From positions 1 to 64,000 of IMG/VR virus record IMGVR_UViG_3300044957_000763: a stretch of 64,000 nucleotides of DNA; one strand, given 5' to 3'. Positions 30,572-33,651 of the stretch are shown here, one piece after another (positions within the stretch are counted from its first letter, which is position 1; every line of letters starts with the position of its first letter). The translations under genes and the position numbers were made by a program. The notes under the pieces were generated by a model that was given only the letters and a program-made list of their open reading frames with translations, had not been told where the DNA came from and searched no databases.

Positions 30572-32194
30572 TTAATCTTCGTCTTCTACTGGCTTAGTTT
30601 CCTTAGCTCCACCAACAAAAGCCGCGATAACCTGCGGGACATCAGCCGAGAATCCGGCAATGTCAAGGGCAAGCGGGTCATTCGGGTCTGCGATGCTGAA
30701 GTTGCTGGCCGCTGTAGCCATAACAACCTGTCGAGCATCCTTAACAAACGCCTTTCGGTAGTTTGCCAAGGCGACCTTTGGATGTACGCTTCCGAAATAT
30801 GTTTCGTTGTCAGTGATGACAATGAAGACATCGTATTCGTGCTTGCGCTTTTCGGCCCAAATCATTGGCAACGAACAGTCAGTTGTACCAAAGTTACTCT
30901 TCTGAGCCTTGCTCATGGCCTCGGACAGACTCATCTTTCGAGTGAATCCCAGGTCAACAAATTGACCAGCGAAGCCCATAACCTCAACCGTTTGTTCTGT
31001 TGCTGTCCAAACCATTGACATGGCTGCGGCGACTTCGCACGCAGACAAGCCGCCAGGAAGACCGCTAGTCCAGCTCATTGAACCTGAAACGTCGACACCA
31101 ACCAAGAATCTCTTGCCAGTTGGTTCAACGTTTGCAAACGCCTTGTAGAAGGCATCGTCAAGCGAGGACACAACTGCAGAAATTGGAGTCCAAGAACCAG
31201 AACCCTTGACACCATGACCACTCTGGTAAGTCTTCATGGCAACAAGAACCTGGATTGGGTGCACACGAGACTTACGGATGTACTCGGCATCCTCAAGTTT
31301 CGCAAGAACCAACTTGGTCGCCGCATTGCCCGGCTTAAGCAACTCTGACTTTGTCATGTTGCCCAAGTTACGAATCAAGGCGTTCAGAGGCATATGAGGA
31401 AGCATTGCGTCCCAAACCTCTGGCGCGTTCAAGAACTGAGTAGGTACAGCCTCTCGAGGCAACTTGTAATCAGTAATCAACTTGACAACTTCCTTTGCAG
31501 AAGTAGCCTGTGATGCTGCCAAATATCCCTCGATAATTGCCGGCTTAGCAACCTCTGGTGCCCACTTGTCATCTACAATCCAGCGATACAAAGCGTTTCG
31601 TGATTCGTCACCGCTCGGAGAAGGGTGACCAACACGCAAAACGTCTGCATGACTCCAGCCGCTTCGGTTGCGGTACTTAACCGCTTGGAATGCAACCTGG
31701 TCGACATTTCGGGCGTCATACCAGTTCTTGATTGTGCGCTTGATGGCGCGACCAGTCAACTTACGCAGAGATTTCAACTCTTCAAGGAAGGAGAAGAAAG
31801 TCGACGCGGTTCGACAAACATCATTTACTGATGCCAGCGCCGCCTGACGCGTTTCAAGGTTTCCCTCTGATGCTGCTACAGCAAGGGCAAACAATGCATG
31901 GTCTTGCTTTGGTGCCAGTCCACGATTGGAAACGTCGACAATGCGTCGCACAACACGCAGGCCGTCTTCCTTAAGGCATGCCTTAAGTGCGGTGTAATTG
32001 CGCTTAACGTGCTTGTCCTGGTTGCAGTAGTATGTTCCACCTTCTGCACCAAGAATCAGGAACCTGTCGAGCTGGCCCCAATTACTGATGTCGTAAACGA
32101 ATCCGCCGGCGTCATTCTTGACTTGGCGCTCGTCCAATCTCTCTGTCTGTCGAACTTTGTTCGGTGATGGCTTAACGGTTGTTGCGTATTTCAT
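30572..32194 (-). CDS. rsr: Ro60/Rsr TROVE-domain RNA-binding protein with C-terminal vWA domain
   Basis: QVKNDAGGFVY..SNWGQLDRFLILGAEGGTYY, KYRNRSGWSHADVLR..HP, ALIRNLGNMT, VGVDVSGSM (MIDAS), GTTDCSLPM, FIVITDNET. Confidence 0.95.
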   Translation of the reverse strand: MKYATTVKPSPNKVRQTERLDERQVKNDAGGFVYDISNWGQLDRFLILGAEGGTYYCNQDKHVKRNYTALKACLKEDGLRVVRRIVDVSNRGLAPKQDHALFALAVAASEGNLETRQAALASVNDVCRTASTFFSFLEELKSLRKLTGRAIKRTIKNWYDARNVDQVAFQAVKYRNRSGWSHADVLRVGHPSPSGDESRNALYRWIVDDKWAPEVAKPAIIEGYLAASQATSAKEVVKLITDYKLPREAVPTQFLNAPEVWDAMLPHMPLNALIRNLGNMTKSELLKPGNAATKLVLAKLEDAEYIRKSRVHPIQVLVAMKTYQSGHGVKGSGSWTPISAVVSSLDDAFYKAFANVEPTGKRFLVGVDVSGSMSWTSGLPGGLSACEVAAAMSMVWTATEQTVEVMGFAGQFVDLGFTRKMSLSEAMSKAQKSNFGTTDCSLPMIWAEKRKHEYDVFIVITDNETYFGSVHPKVALANYRKAFVKDARQVVMATAASNFSIADPNDPLALDIAGFSADVPQVIAAFVGGAKETKPVEDED

Positions 32195-32231
32195 GTTTTT
32201 CTCCGTACCAGTTTTCTGGTCTATTTTAACA

Positions 32232-32262
32232 CAAATGGCGAGTGAAAATCACTCGCCATTTG
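32232..32262. promoter_or_regulatory. Perfect 14-bp inverted repeat between Y RNA and rsr start
   Basis: CAAATGGCGAGTGA-AAA-TCACTCGCCATTTG. Confidence 0.6.
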
Positions 32263-32272
32263 AGAAAGCTAT

Positions 32273-32400
32273 GCGGTCAAGATGTGAGAACGACGTTTAG
32301 CTGCTCTACCACTGAGCTACAACCTCCTTGTGGGAGATTGGTGGGACTCGAACCCACGACCAGCCCTTTAGCATAGGTAATCGTAACTCGTTCGTACCGC
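32273..32400 (-). ncRNA. yrlA: YrlA-type Y RNA (circularly permuted tRNA mimic)
   Basis: Terminal stem GCGGUACGA.../...UUGACCGC. Inside it: T arm GUGGG-UUCGAGU-CCCAC, then an 8-bp acceptor-like stem CAAUCUCC-CACAA-GGAGGUUG closed by a loop, then D arm GCUC-AGUGGUA-GAGC. It lies immediately upstream of rsr. Confidence 0.9.
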
Positions 32401-32631
32401 ACAATTGTCTCATGGGCAAGTTGTTGCTATTGGTCTTTTGCTTATCCGATAAACCAGTAGCTTCGTCCCACGAAAAATCGTGTACTTGTCGTCGGTGCCT
32501 GGGCACCTACAAATGCAAAAATATATTCATTTAGATGTCTTTCCATCTTGTCATATGGCTCTTAATCCCTCTGCGGTAGCTACACGGCCATACGTGCGCA
32601 CTTATAAATCTATTTTGGTTATTTCCATCAC

Positions 32632-32646
32632 GTGCTATTATAGCAC
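32632..32646 (-). promoter_or_regulatory. Extended -10 promoter (TGcTATAAT) embedded in a 15-bp palindrome, candidate internal promoter/operator for yrlA-rsr
   Basis: Minus strand GTGCTATAATAGCAC is a perfect 7-1-7 inverted repeat; no consensus -35. Confidence 0.5.
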
Positions 32647-32659
32647 ATTTTCGAAAAAC

Positions 32660-32745
32660 TGGTGGCAGTGTGAGGAATCGAACCCCCTATTCCAAGGACA
32701 CCTGGTCTACAGCCAAGCCGACATCCCACTGTCGTCAGCACTGCC
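32660..32745 (-). tRNA. tRNA-Tyr(GTA), second of pair, long variable arm
   Basis: GGCAGTG/CACTGCC acceptor, A73, CCA encoded; anticodon arm CTTGG-CTGTAGA-CCAGG; T loop TTCGATT; atypical linker before the D stem. Confidence 0.85.
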
Positions 32746-32771
32746 ATGCCCCCACTCGTAAGTGGAAATCG

Positions 32772-32858
32772 TGGTGGGGGCCGTGGGATTCGAACCCACT
32801 CAGGCAAATGCCAACAGTTTTACAGACTGGCCCAGCTCTCCTACTCTGGCGCACCCCC
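32772..32858 (-). tRNA. tRNA-Tyr(GTA), first of pair, long variable arm
   Basis: GGGGGTG/GGCCCCC acceptor (G7:G66 mismatch), A73-CCA; CAGT-CTGTAAA-ACTG; GGCA-TT-TGCC variable arm; GTGGG-TTCGAAT-CCCAC. Confidence 0.85.
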
Positions 32859-32885
32859 GGTTGTATAGTTATAGTCACTTTCCAT
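32841..32885 (-). CDS. Mini-ORF MESDYNYTTGGAPE* (Tyr-codon leader), stops inside the D loop of tRNA-Tyr
   Basis: ATG GAA AGT GAC TAT AAC TAT ACA ACC GGG GGT GCG CCA GAG TAG, preceded by purine-rich GAAGAGAGAAAGAAA. Confidence 0.6.
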   Translation of the reverse strand: MESDYNYTTGGAPE

Positions 32886-32931
32886 TTTCTTTCTCTCTTC
32901 TCTTACACGTCGATACAAACTGTCTGCGCCA

Positions 32932-33007: not shown

Positions 33008-33142
33008 ACCTCGCGCGGTGTTCAAAACTTGGGGCGACCGAGGGGTATCGAGCCCCCTAGTGATTTGGTTCACAGCCAAACCCCCTCGCCTTCTGGGTCC
33101 GACCGCCATGTTATTCAGTTGTGTATGATGATGGTCGTCCAT
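32993..33142 (-). CDS. Mini-ORF MDDHHHTQLNN... (49 aa; His-codon leader) reading through the first tRNA-His and stopping in the D arm of the second
   Basis: AGGAAAAGAACA-ATG GAC GAC CAT CAT CAT ACA CAA CTG AAT AAC; it is the tail end of track ORF 32993..33241. Confidence 0.6.
   Translation of the reverse strand: MDDHHHTQLNNMAVGPRRRGGLAVNQITRGLDTPRSPQVLNTARGVAIA
33030..33107 (-). tRNA. tRNA-His(GTG), first of pair, atypical D/T arms, G-1:C73 encoded
   Basis: G-GCGGTCG/CGGTCGC-C-CCA; TTTGG-CTGTGAA-CCAAA; T loop CTCGATA rather than TTCRANY; no U8. Confidence 0.8.
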
Positions 33143-33166
33143 TGTTCTTTTCCTAACTACAAAATT

Positions 33167-33240
33167 TGGCTGGCACGGGTGGATTCGAACCACCATCTCC
33201 AGGGTAACAGCCTGGAATTCTACCATTGAAATACATGCCA
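33167..33240 (-). tRNA. tRNA-Asn(GTT), second of pair, canonical
   Basis: TGGCATG/CGTGCCA (U1-A72), G73, CCA; CCAGG-CTGTTAC-CCTGG; GGTGG-TTCGAAT-CCACC. Confidence 0.92.
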
Positions 33241-33243
33241 CTA

Positions 33244-33319
33244 TGGAGGCCCGCCTGGGTTCTGACCCCAGCCCTTACCGTTTAACAGACGGCCGCAACT
33301 ACCAGCTTGCTCACGAGCC
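33244..33319 (-). tRNA. tRNA-Asn(GTT), first of pair, atypical
   Basis: GGCTCGT/GCGGGCC, T73, CCA; GCCGT-CTGTTAA-ACGGT; G8 and G14 instead of U8/A14; T loop GTCAGAA. Confidence 0.75.
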
Positions 33320-33366
33320 TTGATGTTCGCGCTCCGGCGCGTCACATCAAGTGGCACACCTTCGCG

Positions 33367-33390
33367 CTAATTATTGTCGTTGTCCTCCAT
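33367..33390 (-). CDS. Mini-ORF MEDNDNN* (Asn-codon leader) upstream of the tRNA-Asn pair
   Basis: GAGGAAAAGACA-ATG GAG GAC AAC GAC AAT AAT TAG; good SD (GAGGA) at 7-nt spacing. Confidence 0.6.
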   Translation of the reverse strand: MEDNDNN

Positions 33391-33411
33391 TGTCTTTTCC
33401 TCGTCAAATCT

Positions 33412-33448
33412 AAAAAAAGAAAGCCCGACTCGTAAGCCGGGCTTTCTT
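33412..33448 (-). terminator. Intrinsic terminator (attenuator) of the leader transcript
   Basis: AAGAAAGCCCG-GCT-TACG-AGT-CGGGCTTTCTT followed by a T run on the minus strand. Confidence 0.9.
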
Positions 33449-33469
33449 GGGGATTGGTCAATCTTACGA

Positions 33470-33583
33470 TTAAGCCTGGTACCCCCAGTTAGCCCGAACC
33501 ATATTGGGATAATTATGCACGGCGGTATTGACCTGATAGGTCAACCGTGCATTTCCATTATGGTTATTCAAGCTAAATCGCAT
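33470..33583 (-). CDS. 37-aa Asn/His/Tyr-rich leader peptide MRFSLNNHNGNARLTYQVNTAVHNYPNMVRANWGYQA (not in ORF track)
   Basis: SD AAGGA 6 nt before ATG 33583; 8 Asn, 2 His, 3 Tyr; its 3' end overlaps the antiterminator arm; lies between promoter and terminator. Confidence 0.85.
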   Translation of the reverse strand: MRFSLNNHNGNARLTYQVNTAVHNYPNMVRANWGYQA

Positions 33584-33622
33584 GTTCATTCCTTTCGCGA
33601 TGTTTTCATCGCCCACCTTCAT

Positions 33623-33651
33623 ATTATACAACAGACTTCCGTTTTTGTCAA
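33623..33651 (-). promoter_or_regulatory. Consensus sigma70 promoter for leader-tRNA-Y RNA operon
   Basis: Minus strand TTGACA (33651-33646), 17-nt spacer, TATAAT (33628-33623); T-tracts upstream (UP-like). Confidence 0.92.

Follow-up and report, generated by a model that had tools for sequence, protein, structure and literature searches.

A putative codon-sensing leader in front of phage tRNA genes for asparagine, histidine and tyrosine

Why would a giant phage place six tRNA genes for only three amino acids, asparagine, histidine and tyrosine, behind a short translatable leader and three mini-genes rich in those same codons? The arrangement was found on the minus strand of a 64,000-nucleotide stretch (positions 1 to 64,000 of IMG/VR record IMGVR_UViG_3300044957_000763, here called the window) and looks like a built-in sensor that makes more of these tRNAs when the cell runs short of them. 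A preliminary description made from the sequence alone had listed a consensus promoter, an Asn/His/Tyr-rich leader, a terminator, three modules of a mini-ORF plus two tRNAs, a YrlA Y RNA and rsr (Ro60), and its observation is confirmed, since all these elements are present on the strand and at the place described. The parts are collected in Table 1.

Table 1. Features of the tRNA locus and its surroundings in the window, with supporting evidence.
Feature	Coordinates	Strand	Description and evidence
Sigma-70 consensus promoter	33623..33651	-	TTGACA-17-TATAAT, 12/12 matches; -35 at 33651-33646, -10 at 33628-33623; preceded by T-tracts resembling an UP element; same promoter in L004, L005, L022, L025 and L026, with TATAAA in L024 and L028
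Leader ORF	33470..33583	-	37 codons plus stop; AGGA ribosome site 8 nt upstream; codon cluster 1 (N6 N7 H8 N9 G N11) at 33568-33551, cluster 2 (H23 N24 Y25 P N27) at 33517-33503; called as a 38-aa gene in L026 by the collection's gene caller
Region 1	33566..33576	-	Codons 3-6; pairs with region 2 in the terminated fold (RNAfold minimum-energy structures; RNAalifold helix at columns 56-66:136-146, with compensatory changes)
Region 2 (region A)	33487..33502	-	Codons M28-N32, GGGC core; can pair with region 1 or with the 5' arm of the terminator (antiterminator)
Intrinsic terminator (regions 3:4)	33412..33448	-	14-bp stem plus a U run; compensatory changes in relatives; duplex energy -22 to -32 kcal/mol
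Asn mini-ORF	33367..33390	-	MEDNDNN, then stop; followed by a conserved hairpin (33351-33319) that abuts tRNA N1
tRNA-Asn N1 (GUU)	33244..33319	-	Non-canonical: G1-C72, U73, T-loop GUCAGAA, anticodon loop CUGUUAA; cloverleaf minimum-energy fold; relatives carry other tRNA-Asn genes at this position
tRNA-Asn N2 (GUU)	33167..33240	-	Canonical: U1-A72, G73, CCA encoded; 64.5 bits
His mini-ORF (start)	33110..33142	-	MDDHHHTQLNN...; His codons at 33133-33125; frame runs on into tRNA H1; nearly invariant in five lineages
tRNA-His H1 (GUG)	33030..33107	-	G-1:C73 and CCA encoded; D arm and T loop unusual; 32.1 bits with Rfam tRNA (gathering score 29)
tRNA-His H2 (GUG)	32932..33007	-	Canonical cloverleaf, no encoded G-1; anticodon loop UUGUGGC; 64.1 bits
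Tyr mini-ORF	32841..32885	-	MESDYNYTTGGAPE, then stop (begins MESDYNY); overlaps the first 18 nt of tRNA Y1
tRNA-Tyr Y1 (GUA)	32772..32858	-	Long variable arm
tRNA-Tyr Y2 (GUA)	32660..32745	-	Anticodon loop CUGUAGA (G37); 37.9 bits with the tRNA-Sec model
Extended -10 element	32637..32647	-	TGnTATAAT, read from the sequence; possible separate promoter for the Y RNAs; kept in L004, L005 and L022, TGGTAAAAT in L024
Y-like RNA 1	32409..32474	-	Bulged stem carrying GACGAAG (the GNCGAAN0-1G motif, defined in PMC4201824); fold z-score -3.9; conserved with covariation in L025 and L028
YrlA-like Y RNA	32284..32394	-	tRNA-like T/D module; 40.4 bits, below Rfam's gathering score of 69; same position in every relative; hairpin terminator follows at 32261-32233
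rsr (Ro60 orthologue)	30572..32194	-	540 aa; TROVE (2.7e-34) and vWA_Ro60 (6.1e-57) domains
T4 Rnl1-like RNA ligase	26459..27709	-	Three genes downstream of rsr; phrog_562, E = 2.3e-31; PDB 2c5u and 5tt6, E about 6e-6; PF09511 on the L022 orthologue

The tRNA genes form three same-anticodon pairs, but ARAGORN at default settings finds only N2, H2 and Y1, whereas N1 and Y2 appear at a 95% threshold and H1 is recognised by the Rfam tRNA model. Three of the six tRNAs are non-canonical, which the preliminary description had not stated, and there are two Y-like RNAs rather than the one it listed. It had also noted that both leader and array lack Asp; the leader does lack Asp, but every mini-ORF carries conserved GAC (Asp) codons just before the cognate run.

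Whether such a match between codons and tRNAs could arise by chance was first investigated within the window. Of the 37 leader codons 13 are Asn, His or Tyr, with a binomial P of 2e-4 against the window's own codon usage. For the three mini-ORFs the product of the binomial tails for cognate codons is 3e-8 in the window and 3e-10 in L025, one of the related loci introduced below. Of 27 tRNAs in unrelated phage loci, 24 have no cognate codon in any upstream ATG ORF, and the pattern is absent from these loci.

Conservation was then examined in seven related metagenomic loci, L004, L005, L022, L024, L025, L026 and L028, which keep the same order of parts across Rsr identities from 93% to 57% and a shift in GC content from about 43% to about 60%. 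The leader remains an ORF in all relatives, with M1, N7, N9, Y25 and A31 invariant and H23 kept in six of seven. Overall Asn/His/Tyr enrichment is not significant in L024-L026 (P 0.07-0.26), and only the positions are conserved. The regulatory codons are furthermore dispersed rather than in a long tandem run.

The leader RNA is predicted to fold as a four-segment attenuator with a 1:2 / 2:3 / 3:4 architecture. The RNAalifold consensus gives the 1:2 helix and the terminator, with compensatory change in 12 of 40 pairs, and non-synonymous but base-pair-compensating changes occur in the central hairpin. Region 2 is the best upstream partner of the terminator's 5' arm in all six lineages (-12.6 to -22.7 kcal/mol against a median of -3 to -6), and lineage-specific extensions of this pairing are significant in L024, L025 and L028 (6, 18 and 2 of 1000 shuffles). 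In the window, L022 and L026, however, the 2:3 duplex is no stronger than in dinucleotide-shuffled leaders (290, 135 and 167 of 1000), and part of the positional conservation of region 2 could come from the 1:2 helix or from shared descent. Some cluster-2 codons (N27; Y28 in relatives) also lie so close to region 2 that a ribosome stalled there would cover it. No conserved promoter was found after the terminator, although a huge phage may use its own polymerase and promoters, which the scans cannot see.

In another reading the leader is an independent small gene or small RNA with its own terminator, the tRNAs are made constitutively from unrecognised promoters, and the mini-ORFs are translated or ribosome-bound only to protect or help process the long untranslated precursor. 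The chance-level 2:3 pairing in three lineages, the very strong terminators, the frequent use of non-sigma-70 promoters by huge phages and the A/G-rich spacers, which could simply be RNase E or ribosome-binding sites, speak for it. It is nevertheless considered unlikely, since the only conserved residues of the peptide are the Asn, His and Tyr codons plus the residues encoded by region 2, and since nucleotide changes preserve RNA structure rather than the peptide. It does not explain why each mini-ORF holds exactly the codons of the tRNAs that follow it in all lineages, nor why the His and Tyr codons go against local codon bias. In the GC-rich relatives the regulatory His and Tyr codons are all U-ending (8/8 in L025, 7/7 in L026), although the genes there use CAT 10-23% and TAT 20-24% of the time.

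The mini-ORFs and the same-anticodon tRNA pairs are conserved down to 57% Rsr identity, except that L024 has no His mini-ORF. The mini-ORFs keep the ATG, the cognate codons (HHH in every His module) and a purine-rich ribosome site stronger than that of typical genes here, 14 of 17 being at or below -4.0 kcal/mol against about 14% of random ATGs. Within ATG GAN GAC CAT CAT CAY of the His mini-ORF the only changes are at third codon positions, and the Tyr mini-ORF is conserved in front of different Tyr tRNA classes in different loci. Their geometry differs between modules: the Asn ORF stops 45-55 nt before the tRNA, whereas the Tyr ORF starts only 21-27 nt before it, so that a ribosome paused on the second Tyr codon would cover the 5' end of the tRNA.

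Alternatively the codon runs could act at the RNA level as folding or processing guides for the pre-tRNAs, the match to the anticodons being incidental. For example, CAUCAU would pair with the 5' acceptor strand of H1, and AUGGAGG with the CCUCCA 3' end of N1. Minimum-energy folds pair GACCAUCAU with AUGGUGGUC in L025, L026 and L028, and AUGGAGG with the N1 3' end in all lineages. The stretch ACAACTGAATA after the His codons is invariant even at third codon positions. No such pairing is seen in the Tyr module, however, the His pairing is weaker in the window and in L022, the variable positions inside the mini-ORFs are third codon positions, and the conserved ATG and ribosome site would have no role. 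This reading is doubtful on its own, but the two are not exclusive.

The explanation favoured here, with moderate confidence, is ribosome-mediated attenuation of a phage tRNA array combined with codon sensors for each tRNA pair. In this view a strong host-type promoter drives a short leader mRNA, and ribosomes translating its 37 codons decide whether RNA polymerase stops at the terminator or reads on into the six tRNA genes. When charged tRNA-Asn, -His and -Tyr are plentiful, the ribosome would run through region 2 to the stop codon, region 2 could not pair with the terminator's 5' arm, the terminator would form, and a roughly 200-nt RNA would be released. With no translation at all, regions 1 and 2 would pair and the terminator would also form. 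When one of these tRNAs is scarce, the ribosome would stall at the conserved Asn codons, masking region 1, or at the His/Tyr codons just upstream of region 2, and region 2 would then pair with the terminator's 5' arm and let transcription continue into the array. The new tRNAs would relieve the stall and close a negative feedback loop. Inside the array, the small ORF before each pair, holding two to four codons read by that pair, is inferred to be a local sensor: a ribosome paused on the cognate codons would change the folding of, or access to, the 5' side of the following pre-tRNA. In the His module the His-codon stretch is complementary to the 5' acceptor strand of H1, in the Asn module a conserved helix starts at the stop codon, and the His and Tyr ORFs otherwise run into the tRNA body. 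The comparison of sequences demonstrates the anatomy and its conservation, whereas the stalling logic, the coupling of the mini-ORFs and the selective pressure are inferred from sequence alone.

No description of such a system was found in the literature. Leader-peptide attenuators of amino-acid operons (trpL, hisL, thrL, pheL, ilvL) share the promoter, a short translated ORF with codons for the regulated amino acids, mutually exclusive 1:2 / 2:3 / 3:4 hairpins and an intrinsic terminator ahead of the regulated genes, and more than one amino acid is sensed also in thr and ilv. Here, however, the element is phage-encoded, the regulated genes are tRNAs and not biosynthetic enzymes, so the output would repair a shortage of tRNA rather than of amino acid, the regulatory codons lie in two small clusters rather than one long run, and a second tier of mini-ORFs lies inside the regulated unit. 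T-box riboswitches and the pheM/pheST attenuator are likewise cis-acting leaders that report the status of a specific tRNA and control genes of the same decoding pathway. A T-box binds uncharged tRNA directly and controls synthetases or transporters, and no T-box match was found here, while pheM controls a synthetase and not a tRNA.

The interpretation in the preliminary description, that the phage senses ribosome stalling caused by host cleavage, hypomodification or starvation of these tRNAs and induces replacement tRNAs plus RNA triage, is only partly supported. Nothing in the sequence identifies the trigger, and colicin-E5-type cleavage, queuosine loss and starvation are all only inference. 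Y RNA and rsr are not shown to belong to the attenuated transcript, as the extended -10 element precedes the Y RNAs, a hairpin terminator separates YrlA from rsr, and in L028 1.3 kb of genes and an 11/12 promoter lie between the tRNAs and the Y RNA. In the rsr-yrlA-rtcBA RNA repair operon of Salmonella, switched on by damaged tRNAs through RtcR, Rsr and tRNA-like Y RNAs also sit next to an RNA ligase and expression is tied to the state of tRNAs (PMC7790460, PMC4201824). There the sensor is a protein, RtcR with a CARF domain, that binds tRNA fragments, and the ligase is RtcB, whereas here the proposed sensor is the translating ribosome, the ligase is of the Rnl1 type, and control of rsr by the leader is not shown. 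Phage Rsr/YrlA and jumbo-phage RNA repair provide further context (PMC4201824, PMC7824862).

Phage tRNAs act as counter-defence against tRNA-targeting systems, as with T5 tRNA-Tyr versus Retron-Eco7, T5 tRNA-Lys/Thr/Asn versus PARIS, and mycobacteriophage anticodon-loop variants (PMC11555353, PMC10264068, PMC12409363). As there, the phage supplies its own copies of tRNAs that host systems cut, a strong promoter drives them, and the pairs differ at anticodon-loop positions 32, 37 and 38, as reported for nuclease-evading phage tRNAs. Those tRNAs are, however, described as strongly and constitutively expressed, no codon-sensing control has been reported for them, and the set Asn, His and Tyr matches no single characterised system exactly. 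The same mechanism could instead serve ordinary supply and demand, matching phage tRNA output to the phage's own translation load or to a host tRNA pool that reads NAU codons poorly, with no host attack on tRNAs involved. The regulatory His and Tyr codons are the wobble-read U-ending ones, nothing in the window or the relatives identifies a nuclease or an inhibitor, and phage tRNAs have long been explained by codon compensation (PMC10264068). This purpose remains possible but is held to be the less likely one, since the same three tRNA identities are kept although GC content and therefore codon preference shift strongly, only GUN-anticodon tRNAs are present, each in two anticodon-loop variants, and the neighbours are RNA-damage genes. 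Because the inferred response is more tRNA rather than more amino acid, the pressure is most likely depletion of GUN-anticodon tRNAs in the infected cell, and the neighbouring Y RNAs, Rsr and Rnl1-type ligase point the same way.

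The window, which equals the first 64 kb of the 478,840-bp viral contig IMGVR_UViG_3300044957_000763, carries genes for phage structural proteins (minor tail protein, head decoration, tail fibre and head-tail adaptor) together with many glycosyltransferase genes. At the locus a sigma-70 promoter matching the consensus in 12 of 12 positions is followed, in order, by a small 5′ hairpin, a 37-codon leader ORF with an AGGA ribosome site 8 nt upstream, a terminator with a 14-bp stem and a U run, three modules each made of a mini-ORF followed by two tRNA genes with the same anticodon, two Y-RNA-like elements and rsr. 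Coordinates are collected in the table below. The observation made in the preliminary description is real, and it is conserved and far from what chance would give.

Coordinates of features in the window and in related loci (L-numbers denote loci retrieved with the Rsr protein)
Sequence	Feature	Coordinates	Strand
Window	Whole series, promoter to rsr	33651-30572	minus
Window	Leader ORF	33583-33470	minus
Window	Terminator	33448-33412	minus
Window	Mini-ORF stretches with acidic codons and Asp directly before the cognate run	33388-33367, 33139-33125, 32876-32865	minus
Window	Stretches after the CCA of several tRNAs (A/G-A/G-UUUU-G)	33160-33166, 33020-33029, 32650-32659	minus
Window	tRNA-His H2	32932-33007	minus
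L025	tRNA-His H2	4933-5006	
Window	Remnant of the element between the His and Tyr modules	32886-32931	
L004	Element between the His and Tyr modules	3050-3370	
L005	Element between the His and Tyr modules	3500-3820	
L022	Element between the His and Tyr modules	5092-5410	
L026	Element between the His and Tyr modules	4890-5230	
L004	Long-variable-arm tRNA (GUU) at the N1 position	2650-2736	
L005	Long-variable-arm tRNA (GUU) at the N1 position	3100-3186	
L022	Long-variable-arm tRNA (GUU) at the N1 position	4689-4776	
L004	HNH-type endonuclease-like ORF	about 3660-4180	
L005	HNH-type endonuclease-like ORF	about 4010-4530	
Window	TGnTATAAT element	32647-32637	
Window	Y-like RNA 1	32409-32474	minus
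Window	T4 Rnl1-like RNA ligase gene	26459-27709	minus
Window	Example of dismissed ORFs over the tRNA region	32670-32996	plus
L024 (JAFDWS010000002.1, 1,363,254-bp contig)	Complete phage-type locus	90360-103991	

No close relative was found among GenBank phages, where similarity was limited to about 75-100 nt of tRNA-Tyr. Seven further loci with the same synteny were retrieved with the Rsr protein through metagenome contigs and the protein collection, namely L004, L005, L022, L024, L025, L026 and L028, with Rsr identities of 93, 92, 88, 75, 70, 74 and 57%, respectively. Their GC content differs strongly, and in L025 only 10% of His codons and 20% of Tyr codons end in U, against about 50-60% in the window. 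All seven keep the promoter, leader ORF and terminator, the Asn, His and Tyr modules in that order without any Asp tRNA, and the Y-like RNAs and rsr. The L024 locus, with the same flanking gene order, sits in a contig deposited as an Armatimonadota MAG, and could be an integrated huge prophage, a chimeric assembly or the result of mis-binning; if real, it hints at the host phylum. The more distant Rsr loci, both phage and cellular (L002, L003, L006-L021, L027, L029 and L083-L086), have rsr and often a YrlA-like RNA, and some have tRNA arrays, but none has the leader, the Asn/His/Tyr module or the mini-ORFs. The closest cellular Rsr relatives, in L083 and L086 (55-56% identity), lie among Kdp, two-component and PSCyt/DUF1501 genes without tRNAs, which may indicate the bacterial group from which the phage rsr came. 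A search of IMG/VR with the His mini-ORF pattern gave 52 hits, of which only the source contig has tRNAs beside the match, and a longer 26-base version gave no hit in 185,579 species genomes. The 3′ half of the second Asn tRNA (N2) occurs only in the L024 contig, and N2 is therefore not a recognisable copy of a host tRNA.

The leader ORF is open in every locus and starts at the same MRF (MV in L024), whereas in-frame ATGs further upstream in the window are not conserved and one of them lies before the likely transcription start. Its Shine-Dalgarno pairing was calculated at -5.6 kcal/mol in the window and at -4.3 to -7.4 kcal/mol in the relatives, against a gene median of -2.8. In the peptide alignment, with a mean column identity of 59%, the invariant residues are M1, N7, N9, Y25 and A31, and H23 is kept in six of seven. 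Over-representation of the Asn, His and Tyr codons is significant in the window (2e-4), L022 (1e-2) and L028 (5e-4), but not in L024-L026 (0.07-0.26), and no run is longer than NNHN. Between the window and L004/L005 two substitutions in the central hairpin are compensatory for pairing (A-U to G-C) yet both change the amino acid, so RNA structure and a few codons are under selection, not the peptide.

RNAalifold on the eight leaders gave a long-range helix between codons 3-6 (region 1) and the segment encoding M28-N32 (region 2), an inner hairpin, and the terminator (regions 3:4), with compensatory change in 12 of the 40 pairs, among them columns 193:229 and 196:226 of the terminator. Taken as codons 3-8, region 1 lies directly before or overlaps N6-N9. 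The segment that best pairs with the terminator's 5′ arm is region 2 in all six independent sequences, with energies of -12.6 to -22.7 kcal/mol against a median of -3 to -6 for other 16-nt windows, and truncated transcripts are predicted to fold into this putative antiterminator when region 1 is masked by a ribosome placed at the Asn/His codons. In L024, L025 and L028 region 2 carries extensions matching lineage-specific parts of their own terminators, and there the pairing exceeds dinucleotide shuffles (6, 18 and 2 of 1000). In the window, L022 and L026, however, the 2:3 duplex is not stronger than chance (290, 135 and 167 of 1000), and for the window the argument therefore rests on homology of position rather than on strength. 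These comparisons used per-sequence duplex energies and shuffles, since column-wise pair counting on the leader alignment was abandoned because the terminator arms of distant loci are offset by one column. Duplex energies are -12 to -16 for 1:2, -13 to -23 for 2:3 and -22 to -32 for 3:4, in the range of classical attenuators. The conserved Asn codons lie at the 3′ edge of region 1, the conserved His/Tyr codons lie 3-17 nt upstream of region 2, and the stop codon lies 22-30 nt before the terminator. In this view a ribosome that is not delayed would sit on or just past region 2 while the terminator is being made.

No T-box hit was obtained in 32100-33800 at the Rfam gathering threshold or at E up to 10, and other riboswitches and known leaders gave no credible Rfam match there, the hits to rnk and Thr leaders being carried by the terminator only. 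An independent promoter for the tRNA array was not supported, since a TTGACG just after the terminator has no -10 element and is not conserved, and no conserved promoter follows the terminator. Plus-strand ORFs over the tRNA region were dismissed as by-products of the RNA genes on the other strand.

Of the six predicted tRNAs, ARAGORN at default settings reports three (N2, the second His tRNA H2 and the first Tyr tRNA Y1). The other three are real but atypical: the first His tRNA (H1) scores 32.1 bits with the Rfam tRNA model, above the gathering score of 29, and the first Asn tRNA (N1) and the second Tyr tRNA (Y2) are found only at a 95% ARAGORN threshold, N1 having a clean cloverleaf as its minimum-energy fold. 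One member of each pair is conventional in some respects and the other in others. N2 has U1-A72 and G73, as bacterial tRNA-Asn does, whereas N1 has G1-C72 and U73 and is replaced in L004, L005 and L022 by an 87-88-nt tRNA with a long variable arm (the shape of Leu, Ser or Tyr tRNAs), a GUU (Asn) anticodon and U73. H1 encodes G-1:C73. H2 lacks an encoded G-1, a U preceding G1, and ends CCU rather than CCA, and in L025 and L026 its discriminator is A73 rather than C73, which are unusual identity features for a bacterial-type tRNA-His. Anticodon loops differ within pairs at positions 32, 37 and 38, the kind of difference reported for phage tRNAs that escape anticodon nucleases (PMC10264068). Several tRNAs end with CCA followed by A/G-A/G-UUUU-G, which looks like a shared 3′ processing site (RNase E-type) rather than a terminator. 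In L004 and L005 an HNH-type endonuclease-like ORF replaces Y2 of the window, and the tRNA complement differs between close relatives (N1 swapped, Tyr classes shuffled), suggesting cassette exchange, possibly driven by a homing endonuclease. Four relatives (L004, L005, L022 and L026) have a conserved element of about 300-330 nt between the His and Tyr modules, whose 5′ and 3′ ends form an acceptor-like stem next to a T arm and a CCA-like end. This resembles a tmRNA layout, but neither ARAGORN nor Rfam recognises it, and the window keeps only the first roughly 30 nt and the last roughly 20 nt, as if the element had been cleanly deleted.

Every locus has ATG-GAG-GA(C/A) followed by Asn codons and a stop, every locus except L024, which has a single His tRNA, has ATG-GAN-GAC-CAT-CAT-CAY, and every locus has ATG-GAA-AGY-GAC-TAT-(NNN)-TAY or a close variant. 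Within these stretches the variable positions are third codon positions. The upstream purine-rich ribosome sites pair with the anti-Shine-Dalgarno sequence better than those of most genes in the window, and several of the mini-ORFs were picked as gene starts by the gene callers of the collection. The Tyr mini-ORF is retained in front of three different classes of Tyr tRNA and therefore tracks the anticodon, not the tRNA body. Binomial tails for the cognate codons multiply to 3e-8 in the window, 3e-10 in L025 and 2e-9 in L026, and the pattern is absent from 27 tRNAs in unrelated loci. In GC-rich relatives all regulatory His and Tyr codons are the locally rare U-ending ones, which fits selection on decoding rather than on the amino acid. 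Every mini-ORF starts with acidic residues, and in all lineages a GAC (Asp) codon almost always directly precedes the cognate run (D-N, D-H, D-Y), although Asp, the fourth member of the GUN/queuosine family, has no tRNA gene here; this feature may sensitise stalling or promote drop-off. As to coupling, the His-codon stretch can pair with the 5′ acceptor strand of H1 (9-10 bp in L025, L026 and L028, and 8 of 9 in the window), a conserved helix begins at the Asn stop codon and ends at the first base of N1, and the His and Tyr frames run into the tRNA. A ribosome pausing on, or running through, these ORFs would therefore have to change how the pre-tRNA folds, but the geometry differs between modules, and this part of the interpretation is held with lower confidence.

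Rsr has the TROVE ring domain and a vWA_Ro60 domain. The YrlA-like RNA scores 40.4 bits, and its counterparts in the relatives 33-43 bits, below the gathering score of 69 of the Rfam family RF02553. It does satisfy the criteria of Chen et al. (PMC4201824) of encoding within 4 kb of rsr on the same strand, a tRNA-like T/D module and a GNCGAAN0-1G motif: it lies 90 nt upstream of rsr, its T and D arms align, and it has UACGAACG, while an exact GACGAAG motif occurs in Y-like RNA 1. The latter, upstream of the YrlA-like RNA, is a bulged stem with a fold z-score of -3.9, conserved with covarying stem bases in L025 and L028, and L025 and L026 seem to carry a third tRNA-like element after YrlA. Three genes downstream of rsr lies a T4 Rnl1-like RNA ligase gene, syntenic in the relatives and identified by sequence similarity to the Rnl1 nucleotidyltransferase domain alone (phrog_562, 2.3e-31; PDB 2c5u and 5tt6, about 6e-6). 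The two genes in between, encoding an NPCBM-domain protein of 642 aa and a 295-aa protein, show no RNA-related signature. The 295-aa protein was considered as a Pnkp-like end-healing enzyme, but it has no Walker motif and no Pfam, PHROG or PDB match, and by eye it looks glycosyltransferase-like.

The preliminary description had placed the leader, the tRNA modules, the Y RNA and rsr in one operon. A TGnTATAAT element precedes the Y RNAs, however, and a hairpin terminator lies between YrlA and rsr in the window, L024 and L028. The HNH gene of L004 and L005 lies between the tRNAs and the Y RNAs, and L028 has a methyltransferase gene, a second gene, an 11/12 promoter and a tRNA-Met between the tRNAs and the Y RNA. 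The tRNA unit and the Y RNA-rsr unit are therefore conserved neighbours, but not demonstrably one attenuated transcript, and the proposed interpretation was supported only in part.

The most likely mechanism is a leader-peptide attenuator that gates a phage tRNA array, with additional cognate-codon sensors in front of each tRNA pair. What the sequences establish is the arrangement and its conservation, whereas dependence of read-through on the supply of cognate charged tRNA, aminoacylation of the six tRNAs, activity of the ligase and the coupling of the mini-ORFs to the tRNAs are inferred. The link to tRNA-cleaving host defence is likewise a reasonable inference from what is regulated and from the neighbouring genes, but it is not shown. 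A further-reaching reading remains tentative: tRNA genes could be autoregulated by translation of their own codons, and this phage lineage would carry a two-tier ribosome-based sensor, the first tier a multi-amino-acid leader attenuator and the second one cognate-codon mini-ORF per tRNA pair, gating the folding or processing of that pre-tRNA. Together they would measure the usable pool of GUN-anticodon tRNAs and replace them on demand, as an inducible counter-measure to tRNA-cleaving host immunity linked to Y RNA/Ro60 and Rnl1 repair functions.

Phage Rsr/YrlA (PMC4201824, PMC12135203), jumbo-phage RNA-repair sets including TROVE and Rnl1 (PMC7824862), phage tRNAs as counter-defence (PMC11555353, PMC12409363, PMC10264068) and damaged-tRNA control of the rsr-rtcBA operon (PMC7790460) are already described, whereas full-text searches for leader-peptide or attenuation control of tRNA operons or phage tRNA genes returned nothing relevant. 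Leader-peptide attenuation is a textbook mechanism, but it is known to control amino-acid supply, not tRNA supply. A conserved case in which the controlled genes are the very tRNAs that read the leader's codons would be a new regulatory logic for tRNA genes, and the first sign that a virus measures the usable tRNA pool of its host. The mini-ORFs, if functional, would be a kind of cis-element not described before. If the interpretation holds, it would show that phage tRNA counter-defence can be inducible rather than constitutive, would give compact, portable sensors of the availability of specific tRNAs, and would point to Asn, His and Tyr tRNAs as a shared target in the unknown host.
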